Sequence record: PQ182779.1
Strand: one strand, 5' to 3'
Length of the DNA: 64,000 nt
This document shows positions 8,823 through 61,007 of the stretch, one piece after another. The position numbers were made by a program, and so were the translations under genes. Below the pieces are notes generated by a model. It was given only the letters and a program-made list of their open reading frames with translations. It was not told the DNA's origin and made no database searches. The first letter of the stretch is position 1. The number at the start of each line of letters is the position of its first letter.

Positions 8823-11108
8823 ATGGCACGTCCTAAAAAAGGTCTACTGGGCGCCGGCGCTGCTGGTGCTATTAAATCACTGGTCGACAGCGTTCGCCAG
8901 TCCGTTGAAAAGAACCACACCCTGCTGCCGCAGGGCGCTGCCGCTGGTGTCATGTCTGTTGCGCTGGAAAGCTACGGTGAACTGGGCGTAAACCCGGAAG
9001 AAGTAGAATCCACCCTGGAAGCGGTCAAAGAGTCCCTGAACGACGCGGTCGATCAGATCAGCTCCATCACCGAATCTGCTGATGCAGTAGACGGCGAAGG
9101 CGAAGGCTTTGTTGACGGCGGTGAAGAACTGCGTGAACACCAGAAAGAAGTTGCGGTTGAAGCAGCTGCTGTCCTGGCGATGTCTCACAACGCACCGCGC
9201 GCTTACTACCGTGACGGTTACAGCATTCCGTCCTTTGAAAACGACGTTCGTGTTAACGAATTCGTTTCTGCGGGTGCTAACGGTTCCATCGCGACCCTGC
9301 CGGCCGGTTCCCTGCCGTCTCTGGAATCTTTCGACGAGAAAGAAACCGAAAAATGGCGCGAACACTCCTACGCGATCAACATGATCGTAGCGAAACAGCA
9401 CGAGTTCGCTGAACTGTTCTATCGCACCTATATCGTGACCCCGGACCAGGCTGGCTTCCAGCTGTCTATCCGTCGTAACATGGTGTGGGAAGGCTGGACC
9501 GGTGAAGGTCTGGGCGGCGAGAAACAAGAAATCATCAAGCGTAACATCCTGCAGGGTCTGCTGGATTACACCACTCTGGAAACCAACAGCACCGAGCTGA
9601 TCCCGGTTATCCAGTCTGGCGAAAACGACGACCAGTTCATCGCCCCGTCGGTTCTGGCTGCGCAGACCGTGAAACAGGGTAAAGACACCTTCGATACCAA
9701 CTTCCTGAAATTCAGCGAAAATGGCGAAGGCTTCAACCTGCTGATGCTGGCGCAAACGCCGTCCCGTCTGAAAAAAGGTTCCATGACCTTTACCGACTCC
9801 CTGGACAGCCGTATTGCCCTGAAACAACTGCTGGTCTCCGTCACCAAAGGCGGCACCACTGAACTGCTGGCGCTGGACGTTAACCAGAACCAGTACGCCG
9901 CGTACACCGCGACCCGCGAATACAACTTCCGTCAGATGCAGCTGAAATTCCACACCGCTATCGGTCTGGGCGATCAGACTCGTCTGGTGAACGGCGCTGA
10001 ATCCCAACTCTTCGGTTCTCTGTTCGATCAGGGTTATCGCGTTGAGCTGGACGTGAAAATCGACGGCGAAATGAACGTTGAAAACGGTAACGGCGACACC
10101 TCTCTGCGTTCTCTGCGCGTTGCTCGCGTATTCGACAAAGACGGTAAAGAAATCGCGCTGACCGATTCGCGCGTTGCTGCGGTACTGTCCGGTCTGGAAG
10201 TGAAAGGCGAAGGCTATAGCCTGGAAGCTCGTCTGACCAACATCAACCAGCTGGAAATGGGTCTGCTGATTGACTCCGACGTACAGAAACAAGGTTTCAT
10301 GATCCCGACTCTGCCGCCGCTGGTTATCGTTAAACCGGCCATGGTTGAAGACGACAAAACCTATCCGCGCCTGGAAGCTCTGACCACCGCGTATCGTATC
10401 CAGATGCGTAACAACGCCGTAACCACCCTGCTGAACCGCGCAGACACCCTGAAGTCCTATCTGGGCGTTGGCGTTCCGCACCCGATCGAGTCCAACCTGG
10501 GCCTGGAAGGTGTTGGTCAGTACTACGTGCGTCCGTACTTCAACGAAGCGACCATCGATGTTCTGAACGATCTGAACAGCCTGACCTCTGCTGCAAAACA
10601 GAGCGATATTCAGGGCCTGATCGTGTCCAAGATCAACGAAATGGTTTACACCGCAGATCAGCTGACCGGTTACACCGCTGCTCTGGAAGCTGCCTTCTCT
10701 GGCCGTTCTCCGAAGCCGCACGTAGCTATCGGTACTGACATGCGTCTGCCGCAGTACATCCAGATCAACGGCGACGACCGCACCGTGGGTATCGGTTACG
10801 ATTACACCATCGCGCGTATCTCCGATCTGCGTATGAAAGACAAGATCGTCATGACTTTCATCCTGCCGAACGAGTCTGAACCGCATCCGCTGCAGCACGG
10901 CGTTCTGGGCTTCATCCCGGAATACCTGGTTGATTTCAACATGATCCGTAACCAACGTATCGGTAAAGAAATCCGCCTGACCCCGCGCTACCGCTATTTC
11001 AACTTCCTGCCGATCATGCTGGTCATCAACGTGGTCAACCTGGAAGAAGCGATCGCACAGCGTACCGCGCTCGACGTTAACGAAACTCAGGTTGTTCCTG
11101 CGTCCTAA
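8823..11108 (+). CDS. major capsid protein precursor (phiKZ gp120-type), 761 aa
   Basis: Size, extreme codon bias, an acidic propeptide with ALE/SFE/SLE sites, the C-terminal PRYRYFNFLPIMLVINV, position between helicase and nvRNAP subunit, and a strong downstream hairpin. Confidence 0.88.
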   Translation: MARPKKGLLGAGAAGAIKSLVDSVRQSVEKNHTLLPQGAAAGVMSVALESYGELGVNPEEVESTLEAVKESLNDAVDQISSITESADAVDGEGEGFVDGGEELREHQKEVAVEAAAVLAMSHNAPRAYYRDGYSIPSFENDVRVNEFVSAGANGSIATLPAGSLPSLESFDEKETEKWREHSYAINMIVAKQHEFAELFYRTYIVTPDQAGFQLSIRRNMVWEGWTGEGLGGEKQEIIKRNILQGLLDYTTLETNSTELIPVIQSGENDDQFIAPSVLAAQTVKQGKDTFDTNFLKFSENGEGFNLLMLAQTPSRLKKGSMTFTDSLDSRIALKQLLVSVTKGGTTELLALDVNQNQYAAYTATREYNFRQMQLKFHTAIGLGDQTRLVNGAESQLFGSLFDQGYRVELDVKIDGEMNVENGNGDTSLRSLRVARVFDKDGKEIALTDSRVAAVLSGLEVKGEGYSLEARLTNINQLEMGLLIDSDVQKQGFMIPTLPPLVIVKPAMVEDDKTYPRLEALTTAYRIQMRNNAVTTLLNRADTLKSYLGVGVPHPIESNLGLEGVGQYYVRPYFNEATIDVLNDLNSLTSAAKQSDIQGLIVSKINEMVYTADQLTGYTAALEAAFSGRSPKPHVAIGTDMRLPQYIQINGDDRTVGIGYDYTIARISDLRMKDKIVMTFILPNESEPHPLQHGVLGFIPEYLVDFNMIRNQRIGKEIRLTPRYRYFNFLPIMLVINVVNLEEAIAQRTALDVNETQVVPAS

Positions 11109-11142
11109 GTTAACGCGCGTAAGTTAGTTTACTAACTCTTAG

Positions 11143-11172
11143 CCCAGTCTCCCGCTTCGGCGGGAGACTGGG
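11143..11172 (+). terminator. hairpin H3 after capsid gene
   Basis: CCCAGTCTCCCGC-TTCG-GCGGGAGACTGGG with a UUCG loop. Followed by TCTATG, with no U-tract. Confidence 0.75.
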
Positions 11173-11197
11173 TCTATGTCCGTCAAATCGAAAAATG

Positions 11198-11223
11198 TTC
11201 AGACCTATATTACCTTATTGAGA
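11198..11223 (+). promoter_or_regulatory. putative early (virion-RNAP) promoter
   Basis: TTCAGACC-TATATTAC-CTTATTGAGA. TATATTAC is the reported phiKZ early consensus. Near-identical copy at 48469. Confidence 0.65.
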
Positions 11224-11302
11224 GTGTATAGAAGGATCCTTGAGAAAGATCCAAACTGGCCGGAACGAAAGTTCCATTTCAATTCACTAACAGGAAGTAC
11301 GG

Positions 11303-12301
11303 ATGGTCTATAAGAGAGATAATCCTCGAAAAGAAAAGATGCCCCATGAGTTTCTAGTGATGGCAAATGATTACCGTACAGGGAATTGTGATTTATCCGT
11401 TACCATGGAGATCACTAACAACTATCGGTACGATCTTGCTGTACAGAAATCCGATGGGACTGACAATGTTGTATTTTCTCACGGAACGGCAAAGTTACGT
11501 GGGTATTTGATCATCCACCTTACCGTACTCTATTGCACTGATACGGTCAATATTGACGACCCGAAGAATAATTATGCTGAGGCGAGCTTCGGCCTTTATG
11601 ATGCTGTCAAAGGTAACTGCATGGTGCACTTTGACGAGGACCTACGTTGCTCGAGAAACCATTACAAATACCGTATGGTGTTCTTGATAGACGAAAGCGA
11701 TTTCGATACGTTAGGGTCGGAGATTAGCGTCCCGGGTTTAGGGATGCGGATTTCTAAAGCGTCTTTGGTTGATCGTGAAGAAACCATTCACGATATTGTC
11801 CAGGATGATATCGGGTGTAAAATCAGTAAGGTGTCAGGTATTGTCGTGAGTGCTGTCGACAAAGAACGATTTGTCGAAGGGCTTTATTATACCATCGGTA
11901 ACCAGGTATTGAAAGTCAATATCTCTCGTGCGTCTAACGAGCCCGATGGCGTCACTGTTCAAAACTACGGCAAAATTAAGGAGGGACTTCGCTTATTAGC
12001 GACTAAAAGCTTCTTTTCTTTCGAAGATGCAATATCGGGAAACAATCCGTTAGGGATTAAGTTCCATACGTCCCGAGAAGCAGCTTTGAAAGAACTTGAG
12101 ATGGAAAAGGCGTCGTTAAAGGAAGGGAAGCAAAGCGAAGATAAAGAGAAGAAAGCGAAAGTGGTCTCAGCCTGGATTAAAGCCGGCGGAGAATTTATTA
12201 AATCCATTCTACCGACTATGATGAAAGCCGGAAAATGGTTACTGTCTTTCTTGACGAAGAAGGCGGTGTTGGGTGCGACCGCGGCCGCGGTTGTGTTATA
12301 G
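11303..12301 (+). CDS. hypothetical protein, 332 aa
   Basis: AGGA RBS. Ends in a hydrophobic/amphipathic tail (KWLLSFLTKKAVLGATAAAVVL). Confidence 0.7.
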   Translation: MVYKRDNPRKEKMPHEFLVMANDYRTGNCDLSVTMEITNNYRYDLAVQKSDGTDNVVFSHGTAKLRGYLIIHLTVLYCTDTVNIDDPKNNYAEASFGLYDAVKGNCMVHFDEDLRCSRNHYKYRMVFLIDESDFDTLGSEISVPGLGMRISKASLVDREETIHDIVQDDIGCKISKVSGIVVSAVDKERFVEGLYYTIGNQVLKVNISRASNEPDGVTVQNYGKIKEGLRLLATKSFFSFEDAISGNNPLGIKFHTSREAALKELEMEKASLKEGKQSEDKEKKAKVVSAWIKAGGEFIKSILPTMMKAGKWLLSFLTKKAVLGATAAAVVL

Positions 12302-12324: not shown

Positions 12325-13941
12325 GTGGCTGATATAGCATTGTTTAATGACATTGTTGAACCGTTACCCAAGTTCAACAAAGACATTGCCGGTGGATTTG
12401 CTGTTAAGGATTTAGAGGATGCCGAACAGTATATCGATCGAATTGCGCATTGTGCGGCACAGGACTTTCCTCCCGATGTCGAATACCTGGGGATGCGTAG
12501 ACTGACGCCCTACGAAGAGTCTCAGGCGATCATTAAAGGGAATGAAAAGGCGGAACGTCGCGGGGAAGTTGATATTGCGCAAACTGACGCGGTGATGTCG
12601 GAAATGAAACTGCGTTTTCAGAAAATCCACATCCTACCACGGAACATCAATATTCCGTTTGTCAGGGAAGCAGGGACGTTATGGTTAGGCGGCTCACGTG
12701 CAACAATTCATCCGATCCTGGCGGATTTGGTTTTCTCGGTAGCCGGGAATGATTTGTTCACGATCCTCTTCCGAGCGAAGTTCACTTTGAAACGGAGTAT
12801 TTACAGTGTCCTACAAGACGGCGAATCAATCCCGTCCTTTGTAGTCTACGGAAATATCTATCAAGGTAAAACAGGGAACGAAGGGAAGAAATCGTCGTTT
12901 AACTCGACGCTGGGTCATTACCTGTTCTGTAAGTATGGCGTAACGGAAACCTTTAAACGTTTCTACGACATTGACGTCGTGATCGAAGAGAACCGTCACA
13001 GCTTACGTGAGGATTACCCAGAGCAAGACTACGTGATCTTTACCACGCAAGGGTTACCGCCGCCAGAACGCCGCCGCGCAATCAGCGATTGGAAACCCAC
13101 GAACCTGGCGTTGATCATTCCGCGTGAAGCGGTGTTGAACAACATAGGTGTTCAGTTACTGGCGACGCATTTCTTCTACGTCGTCGATCGTTACCCGCAA
13201 CGCTTCAATTTGCAGTACATCGATATGCCAGACACGTGGCGCATTATCATGGGTTTTATTCTGCATCAGGGGAACGAGAACGAAGGGAAACTGCTCAACA
13301 AGGTTGATCTCCATCTTAAGTCGCTCGACTCTTACGTCGATGGCGAGACGAAGAAAAATCTTCGTCAAGAAGGGATCATGGCCAATGACCTTTACGAGTT
13401 GTTTATCCATATCCTTGAAACAATCCAGGATCGACTGAAAGACGATAATTCGGGTAACATGTGGGGGAAATATCTCCTGGTGAAACGGTATGCGTTATCG
13501 GGCATCACGGAGAGTATCTTTAACTTTACCTGGCAGTTAGAAAAAGAACAGAAAACGCTGCGACTGAAGCGGTTAACATGGAAGCTGTCTAGTTTCCTAA
13601 CCACTAACGCATTCCTCGGTATCCAACGGGGACACGGCGAACTTAACTCTGTTCAGTACCCGGGCGATAACATGATTTTCAAACACACGTGTATCGCTAT
13701 CCGTCAAGTCAATGCTGTTATCGGTAAAGGTAAGACAAAAAGTTTCAAACCTAACGAAACGGCTTACCACCTGCATTCAAGTATCATGGAATGTGGTTCA
13801 GTGTGCAACTTTGCGAAAGGTATCCCCGACGGCCGTGGACGTCTAAACGTTTACGCCCACACCGACGACGCTGGGAAATTTATTCGTAATCCGAAAAACA
13901 TTGAACTCCTCGATATGGTACAGCGGGAAATTACCGAATAA
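12325..13941 (+). CDS. non-virion RNA polymerase beta subunit, N-terminal part (phiKZ gp123-type)
   Basis: HSSIMECGSVCNFAKGIPDGRGRLNVY resembles beta region D (HxSHxGRICPxETPEG...GL). Located just after the capsid gene and downstream of an early-type promoter. Confidence 0.75.
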   Translation: MADIALFNDIVEPLPKFNKDIAGGFAVKDLEDAEQYIDRIAHCAAQDFPPDVEYLGMRRLTPYEESQAIIKGNEKAERRGEVDIAQTDAVMSEMKLRFQKIHILPRNINIPFVREAGTLWLGGSRATIHPILADLVFSVAGNDLFTILFRAKFTLKRSIYSVLQDGESIPSFVVYGNIYQGKTGNEGKKSSFNSTLGHYLFCKYGVTETFKRFYDIDVVIEENRHSLREDYPEQDYVIFTTQGLPPPERRRAISDWKPTNLALIIPREAVLNNIGVQLLATHFFYVVDRYPQRFNLQYIDMPDTWRIIMGFILHQGNENEGKLLNKVDLHLKSLDSYVDGETKKNLRQEGIMANDLYELFIHILETIQDRLKDDNSGNMWGKYLLVKRYALSGITESIFNFTWQLEKEQKTLRLKRLTWKLSSFLTTNAFLGIQRGHGELNSVQYPGDNMIFKHTCIAIRQVNAVIGKGKTKSFKPNETAYHLHSSIMECGSVCNFAKGIPDGRGRLNVYAHTDDAGKFIRNPKNIELLDMVQREITE

Positions 13942-13983
13942 ACCATTTTAAATAATTAACTAATCTCGCAGGAGTAATTCTAC

Positions 13984-16203
13984 ATGTATAACCGTCGTCG
14001 TAATGAGATGGATTTTAACGATCGCAACCTGGCTGCTTTCCTGGATGAACGCATCAGCGAACTGTCCCGTGACGATCCGTTCTTCGAATACCTTGACGAT
14101 GCGATTCGTCGCAGTCGTCAGACCCGTGAAAACTTAATCAACTTCGTTTTCGACTCCATGGAAATGTTAGTTGACCTCCGTAAAGAACCAGATGACCTTT
14201 GGGAAGGAGCAATTGAACTCGCCTCATTCTTTGCCGGGGCACTGATCAAAGAAGACCGTAGTGTCGATATCCCCGATCGCCGTACAGAAGACGACATGCT
14301 GTTTTTGGCTGACAATGCTAATAAACTGCGTCGTGCACTGGAAGAGTATGCGGAAGAAGCTGATCGTGGTCGTCGCTTTGGTGACCGTGGACGCGACGAC
14401 CGTCGTGGTGGTTTTGGTCGTAGCAGTGGCGGCTTCGGTCGTGGACGCGAAGAAGAGCGTCGTGGGCGTTATGAAGGCCGTGGTCGTGATGAACGCAGAG
14501 GTCGTTACGAAGATCGTGATGATCGTGGACGGAGTTCCGGTGGTTTCGGTTCTCGTCCAGGTCGTTACGAAAGCGCTATCCCTACTCGTGGTCGTGCCGA
14601 CTCTCGTCGGGAACCTGCGGTAGATATTAATGCTGCCCGTAACAATCGCCGTCGTGTTAACCCGTATGTCGCCACCGCCCGTATGCGCGAACAAGCAAAC
14701 GGGAATGAAGTGAATCGTGACGAACGTGACGATTTCGAAATGCCAGACCCACGCACCGCGAACGCCGCGCCGGCGTACGAGCGAGTAGAGCCGCATGAAG
14801 TCACTCGTCCCGCTTCATTCAGTAAAAAGAAAGCCGCGGCGGCTGAACCTGCACCGGGTTACTCATCAAAAGGTAACCGCTTAGCGAATCGTCCTATTAC
14901 CCGTGAAGACATTGAATCGGGTCTGATCAAATTAGACGATTACGAAGTGGTCATGTCTATCCCGCTCCATCCGAACGAAGCGAATAACCACCGCCCAATC
15001 GCATGGGAAGTGGACTCTGTTCGCCCTGTATGGGACATCACCAGTGACGGTTATCGTTACATGGCGTTTGAACCGTTAACCGCTGAAGAGGTAAAAGAAG
15101 TGGATCGTAAAATTCACGAACTGAACGTCATCGGCGCAAAAGAAGCCGATAATCGTTACCACCCGAAAAACGCCGAGATCCGTAAAGCGATCGCCGGCCC
15201 ACGTTTTAACGTGAAAGCTAACCGCGAACTTCGTGACCAGGACCGTCAGGAGTACGAAGCCGTGGTTGCCAGTATCAAGGAAGAAAACAGCGCACTGCCG
15301 CCGGAAGAACAGAAGGTGGTTCCTGAAGCCCCGAACGCGGGAACAATCTCGTTCGAGAATATTCTCCGTTCAGATGAAACGGTGAAGGGGTTCGGTCTGG
15401 GTCATATCCGTATGCAGGAAATGTCTCGTACCGAAGAAATGACCAACGATCAGAACGGTCACCTGCACACCAACTTCAATGCGTTCCAAACCGCCGCGGA
15501 ATCCTACGAGCCGATTTACACTTGCGCTACGCCGGAAGAAGCACGGTTCACGCTGCGTCAACTGGAGATGACGGGCCTCAACTTCAATGACAATATTGAA
15601 CTGAGCTATATTCAGGATATCCACGATAACCTGAAGCGTGTCATCGATCGCGTTCCTGTTGCGCTGGTAGTGGCTGCGAAACGCCATATCGTCGAACTGG
15701 TGAACTCTATCTTCCGTCTGGAAATGGGTTGCGGTCTGCGCATTGAAAGCTTTGAAGATCTGGCGACGTTGGCGGATGACGTCACTAAAGCACGTGGCGC
15801 TGAGTTTGCGAAGAAACTGGCTGGCGCGTTCTCGTTCCACCTGGCTAACTTCCAAATGTTTAAGTTGGGTTCAGGGATTATTGGTGCCGGTGTCAACGAA
15901 ACCACCGATGCGCGTACCATCTATGTGGTAAAACGTATCAATATGGTTATCGCCCCGATGCTGGTTAACGACCTGAAACTGAGAATCAGTGCTGATGCTC
16001 AGCCGGGTGAAATCTTCTTCGTGTCCCAAGAAACCTCACCTAAACTGCATAACGCGCTGAAAGCCATGAACTTTAATGCCGGTAGCGATATCGCGTGCCT
16101 GAACTATATCTGGTTCGCCGATAACAGCTGGTTAGAAGTCCGCAAAGATTATCAGGATGCTAAATCCGATAGCTTTGTACTGGCTCTGCGTCGTCAAGAC
16201 TAA
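13984..16203 (+). CDS. hypothetical protein, 739 aa, with RG/RD-rich low-complexity region
   Basis: GGAG RBS 9 nt upstream. Helical N-terminus, an R/G/D/E tract at 14362-14610, and a folded-looking C-terminal half. Confidence 0.75.
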   Translation: MYNRRRNEMDFNDRNLAAFLDERISELSRDDPFFEYLDDAIRRSRQTRENLINFVFDSMEMLVDLRKEPDDLWEGAIELASFFAGALIKEDRSVDIPDRRTEDDMLFLADNANKLRRALEEYAEEADRGRRFGDRGRDDRRGGFGRSSGGFGRGREEERRGRYEGRGRDERRGRYEDRDDRGRSSGGFGSRPGRYESAIPTRGRADSRREPAVDINAARNNRRRVNPYVATARMREQANGNEVNRDERDDFEMPDPRTANAAPAYERVEPHEVTRPASFSKKKAAAAEPAPGYSSKGNRLANRPITREDIESGLIKLDDYEVVMSIPLHPNEANNHRPIAWEVDSVRPVWDITSDGYRYMAFEPLTAEEVKEVDRKIHELNVIGAKEADNRYHPKNAEIRKAIAGPRFNVKANRELRDQDRQEYEAVVASIKEENSALPPEEQKVVPEAPNAGTISFENILRSDETVKGFGLGHIRMQEMSRTEEMTNDQNGHLHTNFNAFQTAAESYEPIYTCATPEEARFTLRQLEMTGLNFNDNIELSYIQDIHDNLKRVIDRVPVALVVAAKRHIVELVNSIFRLEMGCGLRIESFEDLATLADDVTKARGAEFAKKLAGAFSFHLANFQMFKLGSGIIGAGVNETTDARTIYVVKRINMVIAPMLVNDLKLRISADAQPGEIFFVSQETSPKLHNALKAMNFNAGSDIACLNYIWFADNSWLEVRKDYQDAKSDSFVLALRRQD

Positions 16204-16213
16204 TCGGTAATAA

Positions 16214-16277
16214 CCCTCCCACAGAGAGCGAAAGCTCTCTGTGGGAGGGAAGAGGGTTTATGCCCTCTTTTTTTTTT
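16214..16277. terminator. tandem hairpin H4 between convergent genes
   Basis: CCCTCCCACAGAGAGC-GAAA-GCTCTCTGTGGGAGGG, then AAGAGGG-TTTATG-CCCTCTT and a T run. Confidence 0.8.
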
Positions 16278-19074
16278 ATTCAGGTCCGTTTGTTTCTTCT
16301 GGTGTAGCGAAAGGATCTGCTTCCTCTTCAGTGGAAGTTTCTCCTCCTCCTTCTAACTCGTCCGTGGCGAAAGGATCTTCCTCGGTATCTTCGAAGGAAC
16401 CGAAGTCGCCACCACCAAAGGCGTCACCGCCACCGGAATCGTTGTTGTCCCAATCATTTCCGGAACTGTCATTGTCCCAACCGCCGCCAGCGTCATTATT
16501 GGCTGTAAGGATCTCATGCTGTTTCGGGTTCTCTACTTCCATCCGTTTCAGTAACGCGTCACGGGTGGCCGCCAATGCCGAGCTGAAATCGCCAAAGTTA
16601 TGCAGCATATTGACAATGTCGGTAGTAAAGACTTTGATCATATCCAGCGATGGATCTTCTTCCGTGACCGGCGACAGGATCTTCACAAAACCCATATCGA
16701 AGCCTTGACTCTGTAACCAGTCGCGTTTCAGGTACGCTGTCATGTGTGCCCTGAGCATATCGATCTTAGATTGATCTTCCGGTGCAAATGCCCCCAGAAG
16801 TTCGCTTGAGATGTAACAGTCGACAATGTCGTCAATCATATCTTTCACTTTGTCGAATTCTTCTTTTTGTTTCTCAATCCGGTTATTTTCCGGACGAGGT
16901 AACTCAAGGTAGAATGCGTCAAAATAAGCGTCGATCGCATCGAGGTATTTTAAATCTTCCGGGATTTGACTTTCTTTATCGAGACGATATTCTTCAGGGA
17001 GCTTATCATTGTTCTCGGCAAAGATCTTCTGAATACGCCCGATTAAAACACCATCCGAGTTCACGTATGATCTGACGAGCTTCTTCCCATGCTTACAGGT
17101 GTCGTCTTGAATCATCATGATACGTTTAGCGTAGAGCTGGTTAGACGTCCAACGGGTGATAGCAAAGTCTGCCTCGTCAGTCATGTCCACCATCGCCGGT
17201 GTAACAAAGAGACCCATATACTGTTGACGACGAAGATCATTGGTAAAGTTCTCGTCAATGATCTGTTTCTGAGATTGGTACTCATTAATGTCCACAGTGG
17301 TATTCGGGATACGTGGGTTACCCTGTACCTCAATCGTCGTCCCCATCATTCTGAGTACGCGGAACATTTCCGCCGAAGAACTGACATCCGTAGGAGTAAC
17401 GGTGCTGGTCATTCGTTGATACTCATCAATCAAGATCGCATAAGCTTTCTCGGGGTCAGGTGTACGCGGGTCGATGTTCATCGTTACTTTGGTTCTCCCT
17501 ACCGCATTCTTCACGCCCGCCATAAAGTTAGCGAAGGTGGTCATGGCTCGCAGTGCAGAGACCTGTTTGATGTCATCAAGCAACGATTTCCCCATCCCGT
17601 TACTGTCGTAGTCGTAAGCGAAATACGCGACTTGTTCAGCAGGGACAAAGACGAGGTTAGTACGTTGGTTCGCAAACTGACGAAACATCATGATACGCAT
17701 GATATCTTCGTTCCAAGCCATCTTCACGTTACGACCGATCAAACCGTTTTTAATACGGTTGAGGATGTTTTCCTCTAAGACCTGGTTATAGACGCGAATA
17801 CGTTCTTCCGCCGCCATTTTGTCGGTATCCATACAGATACCGTTCTGCGCAATGCGGGTTTGCTGGATTAAACTGGAGGTCATGTCCAGTTGTTGCTGAG
17901 CACCCATTGTACCGATCTGACCATTAGTGGCTGCCTGGTTCAGTTCATCGGTTAAGTTGATCGGGTTACCCAGCTCATCCAGGACAATGACGTAACCGAT
18001 GTGGTTTCGCTCATCGCCTTTCGGGTAACACGGAATCACCGATTCTGAGGGGCACTTAATGACCAGCGGATGACCGATACTGCTTCTGCTGGCTTCTGAG
18101 GCCGCAGGAATAACTTTAACAGGGTTAACGCTAGTTTGACCAGACCGTGAGTTGTAAAGCGTTCTCGCGACCGTCGAGACGTTGTTATGACCGTTTCTTG
18201 ACCGGTACGCCTCCATCCCTGCTCCGCTACGTCCGTAGCGGTATTTGTTTCTCAAACGCTCTTCATTAATCTGGTTACGGATATGGCTCAAACCCATAAT
18301 TCCGAGGTTATCGGTGATGGTGGCACTGTCATTAATACGAACCTGATTAGGGTTCATAACCGGCATGGAGAACATGCTTTCTAAAGACGGTGCCGGCGCA
18401 CTACTGCGAATGTTCTTTTTACCTTTATTCGCATCACGGATTTCCTGATCGGTAATTCCTGGGTCACCTAAGATGCCGACAGATTTTAAGGTTCCGTCAA
18501 CGAAATGCGTTTTCAGTTTTTCGTTGAAACTTTCCGTGGCCAGATAACTACCGACTTCGCGAAGGTTGATGATGTCATCGATAACAGCTTCCGGGACAAT
18601 TACACCGACCCACGCACCTGTTTCAAATAACGCCTCTCCGATGATCTCAGGGAGTTTATCGCGTAAGGGGTAGTATGACTCAAAATGATCCCGTATGACC
18701 TCTGTGACTTGATTGAGGACGCTTGGTGGGATCTCTGACGCATCAGTTTTAAATCCTAACTCCCCTTGGGTCATATCGACCGGAGAAAGGGTAGTGGAAA
18801 CAATCATCTGTTTAATCAATTTAATGTCGGGCGCTAAAGAGATGATTGTTTCTGCGTCCAGGTTCTTTCTGGCGCGACGACTGACGAGACGGTCGAAAAT
18901 CGTTGGGTCGGGAACATCGACACCATTTCCAGGTGTAGTCGTACGATGTACCGCATCCTGAACCAGTTTCGACATAATTGCCGTAGCCGAAGGGGTGCGT
19001 TGGAGCCAATCCTGTGGACGACTGGAAACTTTGATCCCGGTAGGATTCACCGTTTTCTTTTCGTAACTATTCAT
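16276..19074 (-). CDS. portal protein (phiKZ gp129-type), 932 aa
   Basis: GKSLLDDIKQVSALRAMTTFANFMAGVKNAVGRTKVTMNIDPRTPDPEK matches the T4-type portal segment (G-x-S-x-L...A...R-x-x-x-x-I-D). Size and divergent position fit. Confidence 0.75.
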   Translation of the reverse strand: MNSYEKKTVNPTGIKVSSRPQDWLQRTPSATAIMSKLVQDAVHRTTTPGNGVDVPDPTIFDRLVSRRARKNLDAETIISLAPDIKLIKQMIVSTTLSPVDMTQGELGFKTDASEIPPSVLNQVTEVIRDHFESYYPLRDKLPEIIGEALFETGAWVGVIVPEAVIDDIINLREVGSYLATESFNEKLKTHFVDGTLKSVGILGDPGITDQEIRDANKGKKNIRSSAPAPSLESMFSMPVMNPNQVRINDSATITDNLGIMGLSHIRNQINEERLRNKYRYGRSGAGMEAYRSRNGHNNVSTVARTLYNSRSGQTSVNPVKVIPAASEASRSSIGHPLVIKCPSESVIPCYPKGDERNHIGYVIVLDELGNPINLTDELNQAATNGQIGTMGAQQQLDMTSSLIQQTRIAQNGICMDTDKMAAEERIRVYNQVLEENILNRIKNGLIGRNVKMAWNEDIMRIMMFRQFANQRTNLVFVPAEQVAYFAYDYDSNGMGKSLLDDIKQVSALRAMTTFANFMAGVKNAVGRTKVTMNIDPRTPDPEKAYAILIDEYQRMTSTVTPTDVSSSAEMFRVLRMMGTTIEVQGNPRIPNTTVDINEYQSQKQIIDENFTNDLRRQQYMGLFVTPAMVDMTDEADFAITRWTSNQLYAKRIMMIQDDTCKHGKKLVRSYVNSDGVLIGRIQKIFAENNDKLPEEYRLDKESQIPEDLKYLDAIDAYFDAFYLELPRPENNRIEKQKEEFDKVKDMIDDIVDCYISSELLGAFAPEDQSKIDMLRAHMTAYLKRDWLQSQGFDMGFVKILSPVTEEDPSLDMIKVFTTDIVNMLHNFGDFSSALAATRDALLKRMEVENPKQHEILTANNDAGGGWDNDSSGNDWDNNDSGGGDAFGGGDFGSFEDTEEDPFATDELEGGGETSTEEEADPFATPEETNGPE

Positions 19075-54422: not shown

Positions 54423-57400
54423 TTAACGAAAGTTCTGCGAGATACTCGTATCGAACGGTTCAAAAGGTTGTTTCCCTCGACTCCCCGTACTGATATCTTT
54501 CCCTCTTAATTCGCTGCTGTTAGGATTGGTCTTAGGGGAAGAATTATTTTCCCCACCGGTTACCGGCACCCCTTTCTCCAGAAGACCTTTGATCAACTTC
54601 AACGTACTGTCCATAGATTTCTGCGTCTCAAGCTGTTCATTCAACGTGTCGGCCCATGTACTTGTCGTACTCGCCGTTTCAGCTGATTGTTTTCTGGATG
54701 CTGCCACAGCAATGCGATTAGCTTCCGCAGTGTTCTCGCGCTGTACTGCCTGCTGAGCCAATGCTTTAGCGTCACGACTGTCCGTGGTACGGGTCGTTGC
54801 CGGCGTGACCGTATCGGTCCCCCTTGTCGTGACAGACGTACTTGTCGTACTACCGACAGGCATCTCACCTTTCGCCGGATTGCTGACGATAGTGTTTGAT
54901 CCCGTCGATGGTGCAACAGGCGGGGTTGTCTCTGTCTCTTTCGGGGCACTGGTACTGACCGCATCACTTCCCCCACCCGGAACGGCTGGTCCAGCCTTCC
55001 CTGTCATCCCGTTCGCCAGCTGAGCGTACTGCCCACCATTTCTGGAGAGATAACCACCAAGACTCGCTACAAGGTCACCCGTCGTCCTGACGTTCTTAAA
55101 GATCTCAGGGTTCGCTCTCGCAACTTTATAATAGTTATCACCCATCGCCGATTGAATCGGTGTGTTGGTCGGTACACGCAGTACGTTCCTTGCACCCCCT
55201 GGCCCTAAGAAGTGCGCCATATAGATATCAGTGGTCGTCAATGGTCTACCAATGTCACCGATGATCTTCGCGTTCTGTTTCATGTATTCCGCCGTGGCCA
55301 ATAACGACGCACGTGGGTCATACTGAGACGTATTCGGGTTCACACCGTATTTCTTAACAAGAGTAGGGAGAATCTCTTTCCAGGTTCCATCAAGGAACTG
55401 ACCGAGTCCTGCTGCTGAGGAGTTCCCGTTCTTCGCCCGAAGCTCAAAGCGAGATTCCTGCGCCACCATTGCCGCCAATGAACCGGCATCAACGCCGACC
55501 ATCTTAGCCACTGCTGCAATCGAATCTTTCACGTTATCCCAACCGTCTCCTTTCGGATCAGGGATATCATTAATCGACCCGCCGGTACCTTCACCGGAAT
55601 GCAGTAAGTTGGTATCCGTGAAACTGCTACCCGCTTCCGAACGTTCAAAGGAGGTTCCCATTGAACCCACACGTTGACCGTAAACACCGACACCGTTAGC
55701 GCCAGTAGCACGTCCCCGCGTATCGGCAGTTAACGCACGGTTATCGCTATAAAGGTCAGCAATCTTGTTACCCAGTGACGAGTTACGAAGCGCTTTACCA
55801 TCAAAGGTCATCTTGGCGATTTCCGCTTCTGTCTTCACTTTCTCTTGGTAAACTTCCTTTTTCCCTTCGAGACGTAATGCATCCAGGTTAGACTGAATAA
55901 CACTGCTGTCCGTGTTTGAGAAGCGGTTAGGCCACGGTGATGCTTTAATGGTCCAGACAGAGACTTTCCCGCCATTGACCTCGGTCGTCGCGCTGTTCAT
56001 GAAGTTTGCAATCTTCAGGAGATCGCTCGCGTTCAGTTTCTTCCATGCGACCATCGGCGAACTATTAGGCGCGATGAAATTGCTTTCAGAACAGAAGTTC
56101 AAGAAGACAGGTAGGAAACGTTTCGTGAACCAGAATAGCCACTGTGCCTTTTCATTGGCGTTATTACTGTTAATACCGAATTGACCGTTCCAGTTAGCGA
56201 AGAACTGTTCGCTGTTCCCTGTCCAGAGGGCTACTCCTTTATCGCCGTATCGAATGAATTTCAACGCCTCAGTCTCTAATGCGAGTAAGGCGTTAACGTC
56301 CCCTTTCAACAGCTCGCGTAAACCGTAAAGTTTAACACGTATCGAGGTCAGGTCATCAATGCGGTTCCCCATCTCGATCAATTCATCCTTGCGCTTATCG
56401 CCGGTCAGGGAAGTTAGCCCTTTCCGGGTATCGCCCGGTGAATAGTAGAGATCGGTTGTTGGATTTACTGTCCGGTTAGCATTATTGGCTTGTGCTTCCT
56501 GTGCCTTTTTGTTCAGTAACTCGATTCCCTTCGGTTGCTTCACGTCTGAAGTAGTGACCAGTTTCTTCTCGCCCGAGGCGATCGCCTTTTTCTCTGCTTC
56601 CGCAAACTCTGCGATGACCTGGTCACGGAAACCGGCAACAAACCGATCACCTGTTACTGAAGACATATTAGGGAATGGCGAGTCAGAGACCAGATAAGGA
56701 GATTCTTTTCCACCGGATGCAATGAAGGTGGCTTTGGCGAAGTCCCCTCGTTGACTCGGTTTCAGGAATTCACTCTCGGTGATTTTAGCTTTAGGGTCCA
56801 TCCGATAAAGTGTTTCAACGTTACGGGTAAAGACCGGAACGAAACGCATCTGATACCACCGTGTCCAACGCTGTACACTACGCTGGTCAGTGATCTCAAC
56901 ATCAAAGGCACTCAGTAACTCTTGGAAAGGTAACGAACCAATCTTGAGTTTCCCTTGCCCTGAGATCTGACTGTTTTTCAGAACCGCTTCTTCTAATGCA
57001 AGTACTTTACCCGCCCGGTCACTGTCTTTCGGGTTGACGCCGTACTGTGCTGCACGGTAGTTTCTCAGCGATGTCATTCTGTTCTTGTAGGCTTGGTATC
57101 CTTTATAAATCAGATAACCTACACCCGCAGCTACCGCCGCTGTGACCAGAACAGGCGCAGAGAGTAATGACCCTGCCGCTACCGCAGCGCCCCTTGCTAA
57201 CATTCCGACTCCGCTAAATAACCCTCTTCCTAAGAAGCCCGCAACCCCTAGCGCCCCTTTCCCGACTTTCTTCAGTACGTTACCGGTTCTACGTAGCAGA
57301 CCGCCTCTCCTACCTCCTGAGCCTGCTACATCCCCTGCCAAATCCCCAGCAGCATCTAACGCTTTCGCACCGCTTATCCAGCGAGGAAGTTCTTTGATCC

Positions 57401-60400
57401 ATTTCCAGAAATTCCCGAATCCGGTTGCAATTTTCCCGACAATGGCACCAACTCCCGTGATAGCGGCCCAGATCAGTTTACCCCAACCACCCCCTTCCTT
57501 CGCCGCTTTCTCAGCGTGTTCAGGTTTGGTCTCTTCCGGTTTCTTTTTCTGAAGACGCTGCCACCAACTTCCGGTACGATTCTTGAGTTTCTCGAACCCG
57601 CCCGTTAAGCGATTCTTGATACCCGAAACACTACCTGTTTCGGTATCGAGGCCGTCAAGTGGATCTTTCCCGGTGAACTGATTAACTAAGAGTCGATAGA
57701 TACGTTTTAGCCATGGTGTCGACCCGCCAGAGAATCCTATCCCTGTATTCAAGCCCCTATTTAAAACACCGCCTACTGCACTCAAACCGTTAGAAGCTAA
57801 ATTAATCGCACCGTTTTTCAGTCCATTTAAAATCTTAAACGGGGTTGTAAGTAAACCACCCACCCCGCGGAGACCGTTGCCGATCATCCCCGTAAGTTTA
57901 GCCAGTCCAGTACGAACGCTACGGCCATTCTTATCAACCAATCCTTTAGCAGCATCCTCAGCAGAAAGTACAGGTGTCATGGTTCTGGTGCGAGGGTCAA
58001 TCACCCCGACGTCACCGTCAATATCGGAAAGTTTCTTGATGACTTTCCCAGTACGCATCGAGAAATATTCCCCATTCGCCAACTTACTGGCGTAGAGACG
58101 CGGTTTCATTTCTCCGAGCACGTAAATATCTGGTAAGCGACCGAATAAGGAAAAGAGACCTTTCCCTAATCCGCCTGCAGCACCTTTGAGTAAATGATAA
58201 GGGGTAAACCTTCCGTTTAATAGACTCCCCACCGCACCGAGTACTTTGTTAAAGGATGTCTTAATGCGGTTTCCTGCGGCGTTAAACAAACCCCGTCTCG
58301 CTTCGTCGTCGGTCAGGACCTGAGTGTTATTTACCACGTCCCAGACTGCGCCCCGTACGTCAGAAAGTTTCTTGATAACCTTCCCGGTGGCTTGGTCAAC
58401 GTAACGACCCGCTGCCAGTCCTTCTTTTTCAATGACTTTCTTTAAACCCTGTGCCGTCGCGATATAGCCGTCTTGAACTTTCTCAAACGCCTGCATCCCG
58501 AAACCTAAGACTTTATTCAGGCCAAAGGTACCGATCGTCATGGCTGCATTGAAAGCCGGGCGACGTACTCGCTTAAAGATCTCCCCTGCTGCTTTAAGCG
58601 GTAAACCGCCAAGATCCCACATCCCTTTCACACCACGACGAATACCGCCGATACCCGCACGGAGCCCGCGTTTAGCCCAGTTCCGTGAGAAACGACGACG
58701 CCCGCCTTGATCGCCAGTATCACCGCCTTGACCACCGCCACCTCCTCCGTTGAGACAACACCCTTCCAGCGCGGTAAGCTGTGCCTCTATTCTGGCCATT
58801 TGCTCATCCCAGAACAACTGAGAGTGTTTCATGGACTCAAGGATTCTATCGGTTTGTTCCGCTAACGCCGTCCCGAAAGAATTTTGTTGGTTCCCGTTAA
58901 GATTAAAGTTAACCGAATTCGGGTTGGTCCAATCTTGTCCGAAGCGACGGAGTTCAGTGATAGGCGGGGTACCCGGCGGTGGGTTACGAGGACGATGTGG
59001 ACCCATGTCGTTAGGGTTAGTCGAGTCGTTGTTACCCGGTGAAGGTTTACCAGATACGCGTGAACCGTAATAGTCTGGGTTAACTTCCCAATTACCGTTC
59101 TTAAAGACCACTGCGCCTTCTGAGATCAGTTCTTCAAGGTTACCGGTTTGCGCTAACGCATGGGCACGATTAAAGATACCCTGCGTTTGGTTAGAGGCGT
59201 AGTTATACTGACCGGCATCGATATTAAGGTTAACGTTTGAAGAAGAGAACGGGTTAAGCGACCATTCACTTTTCTCGTTCAGTTTCAGTCCATAACGTTT
59301 CGCCATCAGTCCTTGCCAAAGGCGTTGGTCGTCACGGGATAACCCTGAGATTTTCTCATTAGCTAGGGCTGCCGGGTTAAAGGCTTTCGAGGTTCTTGCC
59401 CTTGTCATCAGGTGATCAGAAATTTTACCTTTAGCGTCGGGAGATAACCGGTTGTTGTTATCGATGTTCTCGATAAGACGATTAATATTCTCACGCTGTG
59501 AATTGATATCGGTGTCTTTAATCAACGCCTGACGCGTCGACGCCACCGATTCATTAAAGGAGGTAAAAATGCCCTTCTGACGGTTGAAAACCGTGCGCTG
59601 CGTGTTATTATCGCCCGTCCTGAGGACGTCGATACTATGTAAGATTCGGGACAGGTACCCGGACATCTCTTCCATATAGCTGAGTTTACGCTCGTCTACA
59701 GTCGAGATTTTTTCTCCGTTCCCCAATCCTCCGGCGCGAACTACGCCTTCGTCACGGTAACCGCCACGTAAGGTGTCTTTAACAAAGTTCTCGATGGGAT
59801 TATACCATTTCCCGTAACGGTAACCGGAATTTCCCCAATCTGACGCTAAACGTTCTTTGTTGTTAAAGAGGTAGTTGACGCCCTGGAATGTACCGTCCAA
59901 TCGACGTAGTGAAGGCGCACTTTTATTAATGCGTTTTCCGATACGTTTACCGATTTGTAACGCACCCCAGTTCCCTGCTGCCCCTGCTAAAAACTCCTCC
60001 GGGGTGACACCCATTGACGCTAGTAATTCCCGTTGCGCCTCGAGCTGTTCGAGAGAATCGTTGGCCATTGAAAAACCCATAGTGAGTTTTTGCATTCTGT
60101 CGTTAATGGCTTGTTTCGCACGGTCTTTGAACTGGTTACGATAATTACTGGTCCAGTCGTACATTGACTGTTGGATGCGACCAAAGATTTTCTCGCGGCC
60201 CATTCGAAGGAATTCTTCCGAACGGTGCTGTTTTACTACGTCAGGTAACGCGGTGTTTTCGACAACGCTTCTGAGCAGGTTGGAGGTTTCAACCGCAGAC
60301 TTCTGTGCCACGTCTAAATGGGCACGCGAAACCATCAGCTGTCGAATTTGAAGCTCCATACTTTTCTTTTGAAATGCACGCTGTGCACCAAACTGATAAG

Positions 60401-61007
60401 CGGTCTGCTTCGCCAGGAGATTCTGAATACTCGCAATGGCCGTACCCAGTTTTATTTTATACTGCTGATCCGTCAGTTTCTCAGTCAGTTCCTCAGGGCT
60501 CATCTGCTTCGGTTTGTCGTCGTCTTGATTGAAGACTTGAGCTAACGACTGGAGTACCGCTGCGTCTTCAATATTGAGCGCCGCCATTTGAGAACCTGAT
60601 TTATCTGTCCCGTTGTTTCTCGTCAGAAACGCATCGATCTTTTTCTGATACGGTGTAGGAACAAGACGGTTGACGGTACGACCCAACGCTTTCATTTCTC
60701 GCAGCATCGGGGCGGCATCTTTACGGACGTCAGCGTAAAGCGATCGAACGTCGATTAAACCTTTATCAACGTTATCTAAGGTTGTAGTGAAAGAACGCGG
60801 CATGGCCTCTTTCAGGATGGTTTTCGCCATCTGACTGGTAAAGGTCGTTTTCCCCATCTCACGGAGAACGGTCTTTCCTGCCTTTTTTACAGCCTCGCGT
60901 TTACCGCTTCCGTCTTTCGCACCTTGAGGTTCTTTGTCCATGCCCCAATTATCTTCGAGATCAAAATCGTCAAAACGATCCAGATCTATTTTTTCTCTTT
61001 TGGCCAT
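54423..61007 (-). CDS. tail tape-measure protein with lytic transglycosylase domain (phiKZ gp181-type), 2194 aa
   Basis: LAAMVAQESRFELRAKNGNSSAAGLGQFLDGTW (catalytic Glu at 55455-55457) and IYMAHFLGPGGA are SLT motifs. Very long helical, G/A/L-rich body. Confidence 0.88.
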   Translation of the reverse strand: MAKREKIDLDRFDDFDLEDNWGMDKEPQGAKDGSGKREAVKKAGKTVLREMGKTTFTSQMAKTILKEAMPRSFTTTLDNVDKGLIDVRSLYADVRKDAAPMLREMKALGRTVNRLVPTPYQKKIDAFLTRNNGTDKSGSQMAALNIEDAAVLQSLAQVFNQDDDKPKQMSPEELTEKLTDQQYKIKLGTAIASIQNLLAKQTAYQFGAQRAFQKKSMELQIRQLMVSRAHLDVAQKSAVETSNLLRSVVENTALPDVVKQHRSEEFLRMGREKIFGRIQQSMYDWTSNYRNQFKDRAKQAINDRMQKLTMGFSMANDSLEQLEAQRELLASMGVTPEEFLAGAAGNWGALQIGKRIGKRINKSAPSLRRLDGTFQGVNYLFNNKERLASDWGNSGYRYGKWYNPIENFVKDTLRGGYRDEGVVRAGGLGNGEKISTVDERKLSYMEEMSGYLSRILHSIDVLRTGDNNTQRTVFNRQKGIFTSFNESVASTRQALIKDTDINSQRENINRLIENIDNNNRLSPDAKGKISDHLMTRARTSKAFNPAALANEKISGLSRDDQRLWQGLMAKRYGLKLNEKSEWSLNPFSSSNVNLNIDAGQYNYASNQTQGIFNRAHALAQTGNLEELISEGAVVFKNGNWEVNPDYYGSRVSGKPSPGNNDSTNPNDMGPHRPRNPPPGTPPITELRRFGQDWTNPNSVNFNLNGNQQNSFGTALAEQTDRILESMKHSQLFWDEQMARIEAQLTALEGCCLNGGGGGGQGGDTGDQGGRRRFSRNWAKRGLRAGIGGIRRGVKGMWDLGGLPLKAAGEIFKRVRRPAFNAAMTIGTFGLNKVLGFGMQAFEKVQDGYIATAQGLKKVIEKEGLAAGRYVDQATGKVIKKLSDVRGAVWDVVNNTQVLTDDEARRGLFNAAGNRIKTSFNKVLGAVGSLLNGRFTPYHLLKGAAGGLGKGLFSLFGRLPDIYVLGEMKPRLYASKLANGEYFSMRTGKVIKKLSDIDGDVGVIDPRTRTMTPVLSAEDAAKGLVDKNGRSVRTGLAKLTGMIGNGLRGVGGLLTTPFKILNGLKNGAINLASNGLSAVGGVLNRGLNTGIGFSGGSTPWLKRIYRLLVNQFTGKDPLDGLDTETGSVSGIKNRLTGGFEKLKNRTGSWWQRLQKKKPEETKPEHAEKAAKEGGGWGKLIWAAITGVGAIVGKIATGFGNFWKWIKELPRWISGAKALDAAGDLAGDVAGSGGRRGGLLRRTGNVLKKVGKGALGVAGFLGRGLFSGVGMLARGAAVAAGSLLSAPVLVTAAVAAGVGYLIYKGYQAYKNRMTSLRNYRAAQYGVNPKDSDRAGKVLALEEAVLKNSQISGQGKLKIGSLPFQELLSAFDVEITDQRSVQRWTRWYQMRFVPVFTRNVETLYRMDPKAKITESEFLKPSQRGDFAKATFIASGGKESPYLVSDSPFPNMSSVTGDRFVAGFRDQVIAEFAEAEKKAIASGEKKLVTTSDVKQPKGIELLNKKAQEAQANNANRTVNPTTDLYYSPGDTRKGLTSLTGDKRKDELIEMGNRIDDLTSIRVKLYGLRELLKGDVNALLALETEALKFIRYGDKGVALWTGNSEQFFANWNGQFGINSNNANEKAQWLFWFTKRFLPVFLNFCSESNFIAPNSSPMVAWKKLNASDLLKIANFMNSATTEVNGGKVSVWTIKASPWPNRFSNTDSSVIQSNLDALRLEGKKEVYQEKVKTEAEIAKMTFDGKALRNSSLGNKIADLYSDNRALTADTRGRATGANGVGVYGQRVGSMGTSFERSEAGSSFTDTNLLHSGEGTGGSINDIPDPKGDGWDNVKDSIAAVAKMVGVDAGSLAAMVAQESRFELRAKNGNSSAAGLGQFLDGTWKEILPTLVKKYGVNPNTSQYDPRASLLATAEYMKQNAKIIGDIGRPLTTTDIYMAHFLGPGGARNVLRVPTNTPIQSAMGDNYYKVARANPEIFKNVRTTGDLVASLGGYLSRNGGQYAQLANGMTGKAGPAVPGGGSDAVSTSAPKETETTPPVAPSTGSNTIVSNPAKGEMPVGSTTSTSVTTRGTDTVTPATTRTTDSRDAKALAQQAVQRENTAEANRIAVAASRKQSAETASTTSTWADTLNEQLETQKSMDSTLKLIKGLLEKGVPVTGGENNSSPKTNPNSSELRGKDISTGSRGKQPFEPFDTSISQNFR

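Follow-up and report, generated by a model that had tools for sequence, protein, structure and literature searches.

An arginine-rich, lysine-free linker in a probable JADA orthologue from the Klebsiella jumbo phage vB_kp_MJ359

JADA was named in 2026 as a trigger of the Avs5 defence system, and its own molecular function was stated by the authors to be unknown (PMC12931631). JADA from Pa36 (gp316) directly activates three clades of Pseudomonas aeruginosa Avs5, for which the C-terminal domain is sufficient; cryo-electron microscopy resolves the C-terminal part as a rigid dimer whose base is acidic, leaving the N-terminal domain and a lengthy stretch, disordered or flexible, invisible, and the three parts are bounded at residues 1-170, 170-270 and 270-721 (PMC12931631). 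The protein is early, highly abundant, intracellular and reported to be essential, an mScarlet-JADA fusion forms foci at lipid-bounded early-infection vesicles, and the gene lies 'invariantly' downstream of a non-virion RNA polymerase (nvRNAP) subunit gene (PMC12931631). In an antisense screen of phiKZ, depletion of phiKZ122 and of phiKZ124, the JADA gene of that phage, was among the few that strongly affected phage transcription at 30 min, and gp124 was listed as non-core (PMC12571901). These published Pseudomonas data fit a role for JADA in early gene expression. According to a secondary citation (PMC11849849), gp124 reportedly binds a host protein, either DnaX or FtsZ. The subject of the present analysis is an open reading frame (ORF) at positions 13984-16203 of a 64,000-nucleotide stretch of record PQ182779.1 (the window), from the Klebsiella phage vB_kp_MJ359 (hereafter MJ359), a phiKZ-like jumbo phage of the Chimalliviridae. 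Its product very probably belongs to the JADA family and carries an Arg-rich, Lys-free tract that had been flagged in a first-pass annotation of the DNA.

A Chimalliviridae precedent for disorder-dependent condensates is ChmC (PhiPA3 gp61, phiKZ gp67 and Goslar gp176), which needs a disordered N/G-rich tail to form RNA condensates in vitro (PMC11077065). ChmC and the MJ359 protein are alike in being non-virion chimallivirus proteins that pair a disordered, low-complexity region with a folded core, oligomeric in ChmC and, by extrapolation from JADA, probably also in the MJ359 protein. ChmC differs in its Whirly fold, its tetrameric state, its demonstrated RNA binding and its C-terminal tail, N/G-rich and then S/D/E-rich, whereas the Arg-rich linker of the MJ359 protein is internal; the two proteins show no homology. 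Among eukaryotic proteins, condensation has been seen both in vitro and in cells for mixed-charge domains built on Arg, but not for those built on Lys (Greig et al., 10.1101/771592). The main text of the JADA paper does not discuss linker composition and does not name Klebsiella, Serratia or Erwinia hosts, apart from Erwinia in one reference title (PMC12931631). As far as could be checked, neither the Arg-rich linker nor the lineage-specific switching of linker chemistry described below has been described so far.

Assignment of the MJ359 protein to the JADA family

Pfam, PHROGs and NCBIfam hold no family for the ORF itself, and an NCBIfam match to CowN (E=0.069) was dismissed as far below its cutoff. 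Pairwise BLASTP against phiKZ gp124 is not significant (E=0.92), which explains why the record, where the ORF is named kpMJ359_168, labels the product a hypothetical protein. Homology to JADA is visible only with a profile of 19 family sequences, which matches chain A of the JADA structure (PDB 9RP3) at E=3.6e-10; a profile of the five closest sequences has no PDB match even at E=10. A comparison by hhalign with a set made up of the phiKZ, Phabio, 201phi2-1, Psa21, LucasX and two Ralstonia sequences gives a probability of 99.3% (E=5.4e-20) over the last ~180 residues only. An AlphaFold2 (AF2) model of the ORF product, built on 19 homologues and with a mean predicted local distance difference test (pLDDT) score of 75, was compared with known structures by Foldseek. 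This predicted model aligns with 9rp3_A/B over 429 columns (E=8.1e-13, probability 1.00, target-normalised template modelling score 0.63), whereas the best other PDB entry reaches E=0.94. Members from PCH45 and EaH1 touch phrog_15010, the phiKZ124 family, and the matches in BFVD are all uncharacterised proteins of 514-874 residues, those with names coming from jumbo or uncultured phages.

The family was assembled from several searches. Full-length relatives at 68% identity are present in FBKp24 and Centimanus, and relatives of the C-terminal half at 21-30% are present in Serratia phages Moabite, 2050HW, Totoro and PCH45, in Pectobacterium phages and in Salmonella SPLA10 (tblastn; all jumbo phages). 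A word-indexed protein search returned only five close relatives, and a scan of viral contigs with the close alignment returned only MJ359 itself and FBKp24. A profile search of 1.84 billion representative sequences yielded 17 proteins, 15 of them full-length (686-794 residues), a 63-residue fragment and a weak repetitive match to a 1603-residue protein being left out. The most distant members link weakly to genes in the same position in Erwinia PhiEaH1, Ralstonia RSF1 and Pseudomonas Phabio. Phabio gp191, in turn, is a clear homologue of phiKZ gp124, 201phi2-1 gp204 and PhiPA3 gp140/141, and matches chain A of 9RP3 ('Gp316/JADA') at E=5e-104.

Gene order leads to the same family. The series capsid, gp122-like, nvRNAP beta and JADA genes is kept in 15 phages, every relative examined, with a gp129-like portal gene within a few genes downstream in most of them. 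The first-pass annotation had placed the ORF directly behind a non-virion polymerase gene, and this holds: the product of the preceding gene on the same strand is 28% identical to PHIKZ123 over its full length (BLASTP, E=1e-65), with a gap of 42 nucleotides between the two genes. In the E. coli phage Goslar, gp38 is the positional orthologue of JADA and is linked to the family by hhalign (83%, E=8.5e-6). Goslar gp38 (L017:7236-9794, minus strand; 852 residues) is longer than its relatives, with a Gln/Tyr/Pro-rich N-terminal extension and a Gln/Tyr/Pro/Met-rich linker, and has no PHROG family match.

In identity and in architecture, the ORF product is thus very probably a highly divergent orthologue of JADA (Pa36 gp316/phiKZ gp124; PDB 9RP3). 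The AF2 model shows the layout of an N-terminal domain, a long disordered linker and a C-terminal domain of ~450 residues (Table 1). Shared with JADA of Pseudomonas phages are the position on the same strand right after a gp123-type nvRNAP gene, a length of 656-852 residues across the set, this three-part layout with an acidic C-terminal domain, a common C-domain fold and detectable homology in the last ~180 residues. The differences are a pairwise similarity too low for detection, with 12-13% identity in the structure-based alignment to 9RP3, and a linker that is Arg-rich and mixed-charge in MJ359 but uncharged and Q/N/G/P/M-rich in the Pseudomonas phages. Homology of the N-terminal domains is unproven: hhalign gives a probability of 2% (E=0.02), HMMER and hhalign pick roughly the same helices, and a search of the ESM Atlas with the N-domain gave scores of at most 0.55, below the noise level.

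A Klebsiella jumbo-phage protein that cannot be assigned by Pfam, PHROGs or pairwise BLAST is therefore placed in the JADA family, suggesting that the family reaches well beyond Pseudomonas phages. For Klebsiella phages of interest in therapy, the placement also helps in judging whether this protein, exposed to immune recognition, is present in them. No described function had been recognised in the first pass; a named family with a role as an immune trigger can now be given.

Composition of the linker in MJ359 and across the family

The tract had been described as 83 residues made almost entirely of R, G, D, E, S, F and Y between a helical N-terminal domain and a folded C-terminal half, and both the translation and the AF2 model bear this out. 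It contains R27, G20, D9, S7, E7, F4 and Y3 and no Lys, the seven residue types making up 93%. Its dipeptides include 9 RG and 12 GR, and it has two copies of GRSSGGFG and three of GRYE. With the window ORFs as background (R 5.6%, G 6.9%), the binomial p is 4e-14 for Arg and 7e-7 for Gly. The richest 60-residue stretch of the ORF holds 38 R+G, compared with 29 in the next-best ORF, and no other Arg/Gly tract of this kind occurs in the window. As the Arg-rich core, the tract takes up about half of the linker, in which one helix is predicted with low confidence (residues 227-240, pLDDT 57), and its net charge of +11 lies between two acidic domains. Seven aromatic residues are spread through it and 16 acidic residues are interleaved, the charges being more evenly mixed than in 99.8% of shuffles.

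At the DNA level, an 18-nucleotide unit in 2.5 tandem copies encodes the single tri-RG motif of the protein (residues 160-173), and degenerate direct repeats of 13-26 nucleotides occur in the tract besides it; internal duplication therefore accounts for part of the tract. Two ORFs that overlap the tract, at 14224-14796 (minus strand; Thr/Val-rich, 190 residues) and 14261-14623 (plus strand; Val-rich, 120 residues), were read as shadow frames and not as genes. Since the 739-residue frame has homologues and a confident model, they are taken as by-products of the CGT/GGT-rich repeats.

RGG/RG-motif regions are reportedly defined, in the scheme attributed to Thandapani et al. 2013, by clustered di-/tri-RGG or tri-RG repeats. 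The MJ359 protein has one tri-RG, two di-RG and one RGG motif and no di- or tri-RGG, and so the tract is only marginally an RG-motif region. It resembles the RGG/RG regions of FUS, LAF-1, DDX4 and SERBP1 in that its RG dipeptides are clustered and set apart by Gly, Ser and aromatic residues (GRSSGGFG, RGRYEG), but differs in its high acidic content, in an RG density that is not kept in orthologues and in the lack of an RNA recognition motif or helicase domain. Mixed-charge domains are defined by Greig et al. in 60-residue windows by a fraction of charged residues of at least 0.7, a positive to negative ratio of 1:0.7-1.3 and Arg as the basic residue. The best MJ359 window has the ratio (1:0.76) and the Arg use (21 Arg, no Lys), but with 21 basic and 16 acidic residues its charged fraction is lowered to 0.62 by the Gly, Ser and aromatic residues among them. 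Like the mixed-charge domains of the eukaryotic speckle proteins U1-70K, CPSF6 and NELF-E, the MJ359 linker is disordered, excludes Lys, interleaves well-mixed charges and is slightly net positive. Unlike them, it lies below the charge threshold and belongs to a phage protein of the bacterial cytoplasm. By its composition, the linker may work like an Arg-enriched mixed-charge domain without formally qualifying as one.

An Arg-rich mixed-charge tract is present at approximately residues 105-200 in every Klebsiella, Serratia, Erwinia, Salmonella and Ralstonia member and in related metagenomic sequences. Per 80 residues, these linkers contain 18-29 Arg, 0-1 Lys and 10-24 acidic residues, with variable Gly, Ser and aromatic content, whereas Lys makes up 5% elsewhere in the window ORFs. 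The number of RG and GR dipeptides ranges from 2 to 28 on the same basis, so the RG repeats themselves are not conserved; di-RGG occurs only in EaH1 and in the member designated P0021, and tri-RGG in none. The charged fraction reaches at least 0.70 in 2 of 33 family sequences, P0015 having the required charge ratio and P0018 lacking it. The linker cannot be aligned between clades, yet its composition is kept at ~20% full-length identity to the MJ359 protein, and 20-27 gap columns fall in the tract even when close relatives are aligned, compared with 0-7 in either folded domain. Two distant members have a blocky charge pattern, unlike the well-mixed pattern of MJ359.

The remaining lineages have other chemistries. 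Linkers of the Pseudomonas phages phiKZ, Phabio, 201phi2-1 and Psa21 are uncharged and rich in Q/N/G/P/S/M/Y, that of Goslar gp38 is uncharged and Q/Y/P-rich, and neither group has a di- or tri-RG motif; the linker of Xanthomonas LucasX consists of Gly, Arg, Gln and Tyr and is of an RGG/YG type. An unrooted tree of the C-terminal domain, from which the near-duplicates P0001, P0002, P0012, P0014 and P0016 were left out, has 23 Arg-rich sequences among 29 non-redundant members, spread over several deep clades. The uncharged Pseudomonas group forms one well-supported clade that is sister to an Arg-rich Ralstonia pair, and Goslar has a very long branch, which makes its placement unreliable. Conservation of composition in homologues, which the first-pass annotation had named as a check, thus holds for close and distant Arg-rich members but not for the Pseudomonas and Goslar linkers. 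Because these are uncharged and Q/N/G/P/Y-rich, the property conserved across the sequences of the family is a low-complexity linker and not the RG motif. Within the Arg-rich clades, what the sequences keep is Arg, never Lys, mixed with acidic residues, again not the RG motif; in this respect the first-pass interpretation is not supported.

The linker of JADA is therefore not a featureless spacer: it uses Arg and never Lys, together with acidic, Gly/Ser and aromatic residues, in a composition kept over long divergence, and other lineages replace it by low-complexity chemistries known from eukaryotic condensates. Two explanations of this variation were set aside. Escape from Avs5 does not account for it because recognition maps to the C-terminal domain (PMC12931631). 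Compensation for an acidic C-terminal domain does not account for the Arg-rich tract because every member's domain is acidic (-17 to -27), and equally so beside uncharged linkers. The N-terminal part and linker together are near neutral in most members (-6 to +2), SPLA10 being at -12.

The low-confidence part of the linker also contains the string A-Y-E-R-V-E-P. E266 and V268 are at least 90% conserved among 19 family members, and AYE(R/Q)VEP is nearly invariant throughout the Klebsiella/Serratia clade; the string may be a docking motif. Strings resembling L/A-Y-D-V/E-P occur in the linkers of phiKZ gp124, Phabio gp191, 201phi2-1 gp204 and Goslar gp38, although these come from a loose pattern search and their equivalence across clades is unproven.

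Possible roles of the linker

Taken as a whole, the explanation regarded as reasonably probable is that the tract, mixed in charge, rich in Arg and free of Lys, forms the core of a JADA orthologue's linker and acts as a series of cohesive stickers; the cohesive or nucleic-acid-contacting role of the linker, judged on its own, is put forward tentatively. Dimerisation of the C-terminal domain would present two long low-complexity linkers, and in the MJ359 lineage these would be cohesive, multivalent 'stickers' whose arginines contact acidic, aromatic and phosphate groups. Through weak contacts of this kind, a protein that is early and abundant could be concentrated where early phage transcription takes place, and the linkers could there touch nascent RNA or DNA non-specifically. 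The uncharged Q/N/G/P/Y linkers of the Pseudomonas phages and Goslar would do the same job with another chemistry. The bias for Arg over Lys is kept despite indels, unalignable sequence and ~20% identity, suggesting that linker composition is under selection. The uncharged linkers also look like eukaryotic cohesive low-complexity types and not like plain spacers, which is counted in favour of a cohesive role. The preference for Arg, by which condensing and non-condensing mixed-charge domains of eukaryotes are told apart (Greig et al., 10.1101/771592), and the ChmC precedent (PMC11077065) count the same way. A family with no assigned function gains a concrete sequence feature that may bear on early phage transcription at the infection vesicle. 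The proposal that the protein scaffolds transcription, made in the first pass, is in keeping with the transcription defects on knockdown, the early abundant expression and the vesicle foci of the Pseudomonas orthologues (PMC12931631, PMC12571901), but the site indicated is the early-infection vesicle and not the phage nucleus.

Several points weigh against a cohesive linker. No member of the JADA family is known to bind RNA or to phase-separate, and the Arg-rich chemistry is not needed for vesicle foci, since the orthologue that showed them has an uncharged linker. The protein as a whole is acidic (net -17), the charged fraction lies below the mixed-charge threshold, and RGG triplets and tri-RG motifs are limited to one each. 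With charges so unusually well mixed, strong self-coacervation is less to be expected than a soluble, expanded chain. What is said of timing, essentiality, dimerisation, localisation and Avs5 activation is carried over from Pseudomonas orthologues and applies to the MJ359 protein by homology only, across the low structural identity given above. The phenotype of phiKZ124 knockdown could include effects on the adjoining polymerase gene.

In a rival explanation, the linker is a passive flexible tether: a long, soluble, unfolded chain that lets the N-terminal domain and the dimeric C-terminal domain reach separate partners, its composition being one neutral choice among several, with no part in binding or condensing. 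A tether would agree with a linker that is indel-rich, unalignable and wholly different in chemistry between clades (Arg-rich mixed-charge, RGG/YG-like or uncharged Q/N/G/P), with charges mixed better than chance in MJ359, as in an expanded polyampholyte, and with the near-neutral N-terminal part and linker of most members. However, a neutral spacer should accept Lys, and the 0-1 Lys against 18-29 Arg per 80 residues in deeply diverged members is not what such a spacer predicts; nor are aromatic residues interspersed throughout the tract, or uncharged flavours that resemble eukaryotic cohesive types instead of typical Pro/Glu/Lys/Ser spacers. A purely passive tether is therefore considered somewhat unlikely. 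A dedicated RNA-binding region of the RG/RGG type, which would scaffold mRNA handling or export in the manner of the FUS, LAF-1 and DDX4 tails, is less likely still. It would suit the 19 RG/GR dipeptides within 80 residues, the tri-RG motif, the scores of the low-complexity segment of the profile against Arg-rich regions of DHX8 and SERBP1, and a gene that adjoins one for an RNA polymerase subunit and probably shares its transcript. However, the matches to DHX8 and SERBP1 reflect composition alone, and the variable RG content of the Arg-rich orthologues, the scarcity of di-RGG, the absence of tri-RGG, the interleaved acidic residues and the net negative charge of the protein all speak against it. 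In addition, ChmC already fills an mRNA-export-associated role in the Chimalliviridae (PMC11077065), and RG-mediated RNA binding cannot be the core mechanism of the family because the orthologues with experimental data, like Goslar, have uncharged linkers.

The vesicle foci raise the possibility that the Arg/aromatic tract is a membrane tether that binds anionic phospholipids of the early-infection vesicle. The lipid boundary of these vesicles (PMC12931631) and the 27 Arg and seven aromatic residues of the tract would accord with this, but the orthologue localised there has an uncharged linker (PMC12931631), 16 acidic residues are interleaved in the MJ359 tract and the AF2 model has no amphipathic helix in residues 127-209, making such a tether very unlikely. 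The position of the gene between capsid and portal genes, together with the Arg-rich tract, could likewise point to a packaged head protein that condenses DNA in the manner of a protamine or is injected. This is the least probable of the alternatives, to the point of being almost discounted: the phiKZ, 201phi2-1, Phabio and FBKp24 records mark neighbouring products, but not the JADA orthologue, as virion proteins, published work describes JADA as intracellular, early and highly abundant (PMC12931631), and the MJ359 protein is net acidic. The orthologues are not marked as virion components in any related record examined, which supports the first pass on this point.

The cohesive-linker explanation can be extended to a phage 'transcription body': at the early-infection vesicle, a dimeric JADA would serve as the scaffold, and its low-complexity linker would nucleate a condensate that forms around polymerase and mRNA as these emerge. 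Lineages would have swapped the chemistry of the linker and kept the scaffold, the flavours being Arg-rich mixed-charge (Klebsiella, Serratia, Erwinia, Salmonella and Ralstonia), RGG/YG-like (Xanthomonas) and prion-like Q/N/G/P/Y (Pseudomonas and Goslar). This extension is speculative and judged unlikely. If true, bacterial viruses would have their own equivalent of the low-complexity domains found in eukaryotic speckles and stress granules, and an essential protein that now lacks a molecular function would gain one.

Gene neighbourhood and distribution

The JADA gene probably forms a three-gene unit with the gp122-like and nvRNAP beta genes and is probably co-transcribed with the polymerase gene, given that a conserved upstream block and a strong terminator bracket the three genes (Table 1). 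The upstream block overlaps the 3' end of a promoter annotated in the FBKp24 record. Its core, TATATTAC, has no repeat elsewhere in the window, and neither TATATTAC nor CTATATTAC, both taken from the conserved block, is enriched within the window; a scan for sigma-70 promoters is irrelevant to phages of this kind. The order in the region 11141-11224, 3' of the capsid gene, is a GC-rich hairpin, read as the terminator of that gene, and then the 22-nucleotide block. The terminator that follows the JADA gene was missed by a simple consensus terminator scan and sits between convergent genes, the neighbour being a gp129-type portal/virion gene of 932 residues.

Table 1. Positions of the features discussed, numbered from the first nucleotide of the window
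Feature	Position	Strand	Basis or remark
phiKZ-type major capsid protein	8823-11108		Pfam PF25620, E=2e-218
Conserved 22-nucleotide block, candidate promoter of the three-gene unit	11203-11224	+	Invariant between MJ359 and FBKp24, flanks diverge
Gene of 332 residues, positional equivalent of phiKZ gp122	11303-12301	+	Same position in all relatives; weak PHROG 7727 match
nvRNAP beta-type subunit, phiKZ gp123 orthologue	12325-13941	+	PHROG 2943, E=1.6e-155
Shine-Dalgarno sequence AGGAG	13970-13974	+	9 nucleotides before the ATG of the ORF, read from the sequence
Probable JADA orthologue, 739 residues	13984-16203	+	Profile, hhalign, Foldseek, BFVD
N-terminal helical domain, residues 7-128, net charge ~-13	14002-14367	+	AF2, pLDDT 81-93, five helices
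Flagged Arg/Gly/Asp/Glu/Ser tract, 83 residues (127-209)	14362-14610	+	Translated in the frame of the ORF
Predicted disordered interdomain linker, residues ~129-290 (~160 residues)	14368-14853	+	AF2, pLDDT <50 over residues 130-229, 240-254 and 256-288
18-nucleotide unit in 2.5 tandem copies, translated as R-G-R-[Y/D]-E-x hexapeptides	14461-14505	+	Repeat analysis
Motif A-Y-E-R-V-E-P, residues 264-270, in the low-confidence linker	14773-14793	+	Possible docking motif
C-terminal domain with predicted JADA fold, residues 291-739, net charge -15	14854-16200	+	Confident mixed alpha/beta AF2 model (residues 290-739)
Terminator, two adjacent perfect hairpins (16-bp and 8-bp, back to back) and ten T's	16214-16277	+	-48.5 kcal/mol, z=-8.2

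The DNA of the ORF is 100% identical to that of vB_kp_MJ359 (PQ182779.1), and nine other records from Klebsiella hosts match it at 99% or more. Records at this level of identity include MN871447-MN871453, several of which are titled 'Serratia phage Kp...' with Klebsiella pneumoniae in the host field, and most of which are unannotated. Near-identical ORF sequence (0.77-0.85 of the sampled words) is present in public runs from fertilizer, gut, wastewater, food-fermentation, plant and surface metagenomes, and the MJ359 lineage appears to be widespread in the environment. The public runs that carry the sequence are mostly metagenomes, with no infection time course among them.

Two other low-complexity segments occur in the window. 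The C-terminus of the portal/gp129-like protein (16279-16497, minus strand; residues ~860-932) is an acidic tail rich in Gly, Asp, Glu, Phe and Trp in which DPFAT occurs twice. The tail is opposite in charge to the JADA linker and the two genes lie tail-to-tail, although an interaction between them is pure speculation. A tail protein of 2194 residues (54423-61007, minus strand; PHROG 3201, with a transglycosylase region) contains poly-Gly followed by a short Arg cluster at residues ~754-813, the second most R+G-rich segment in the window.

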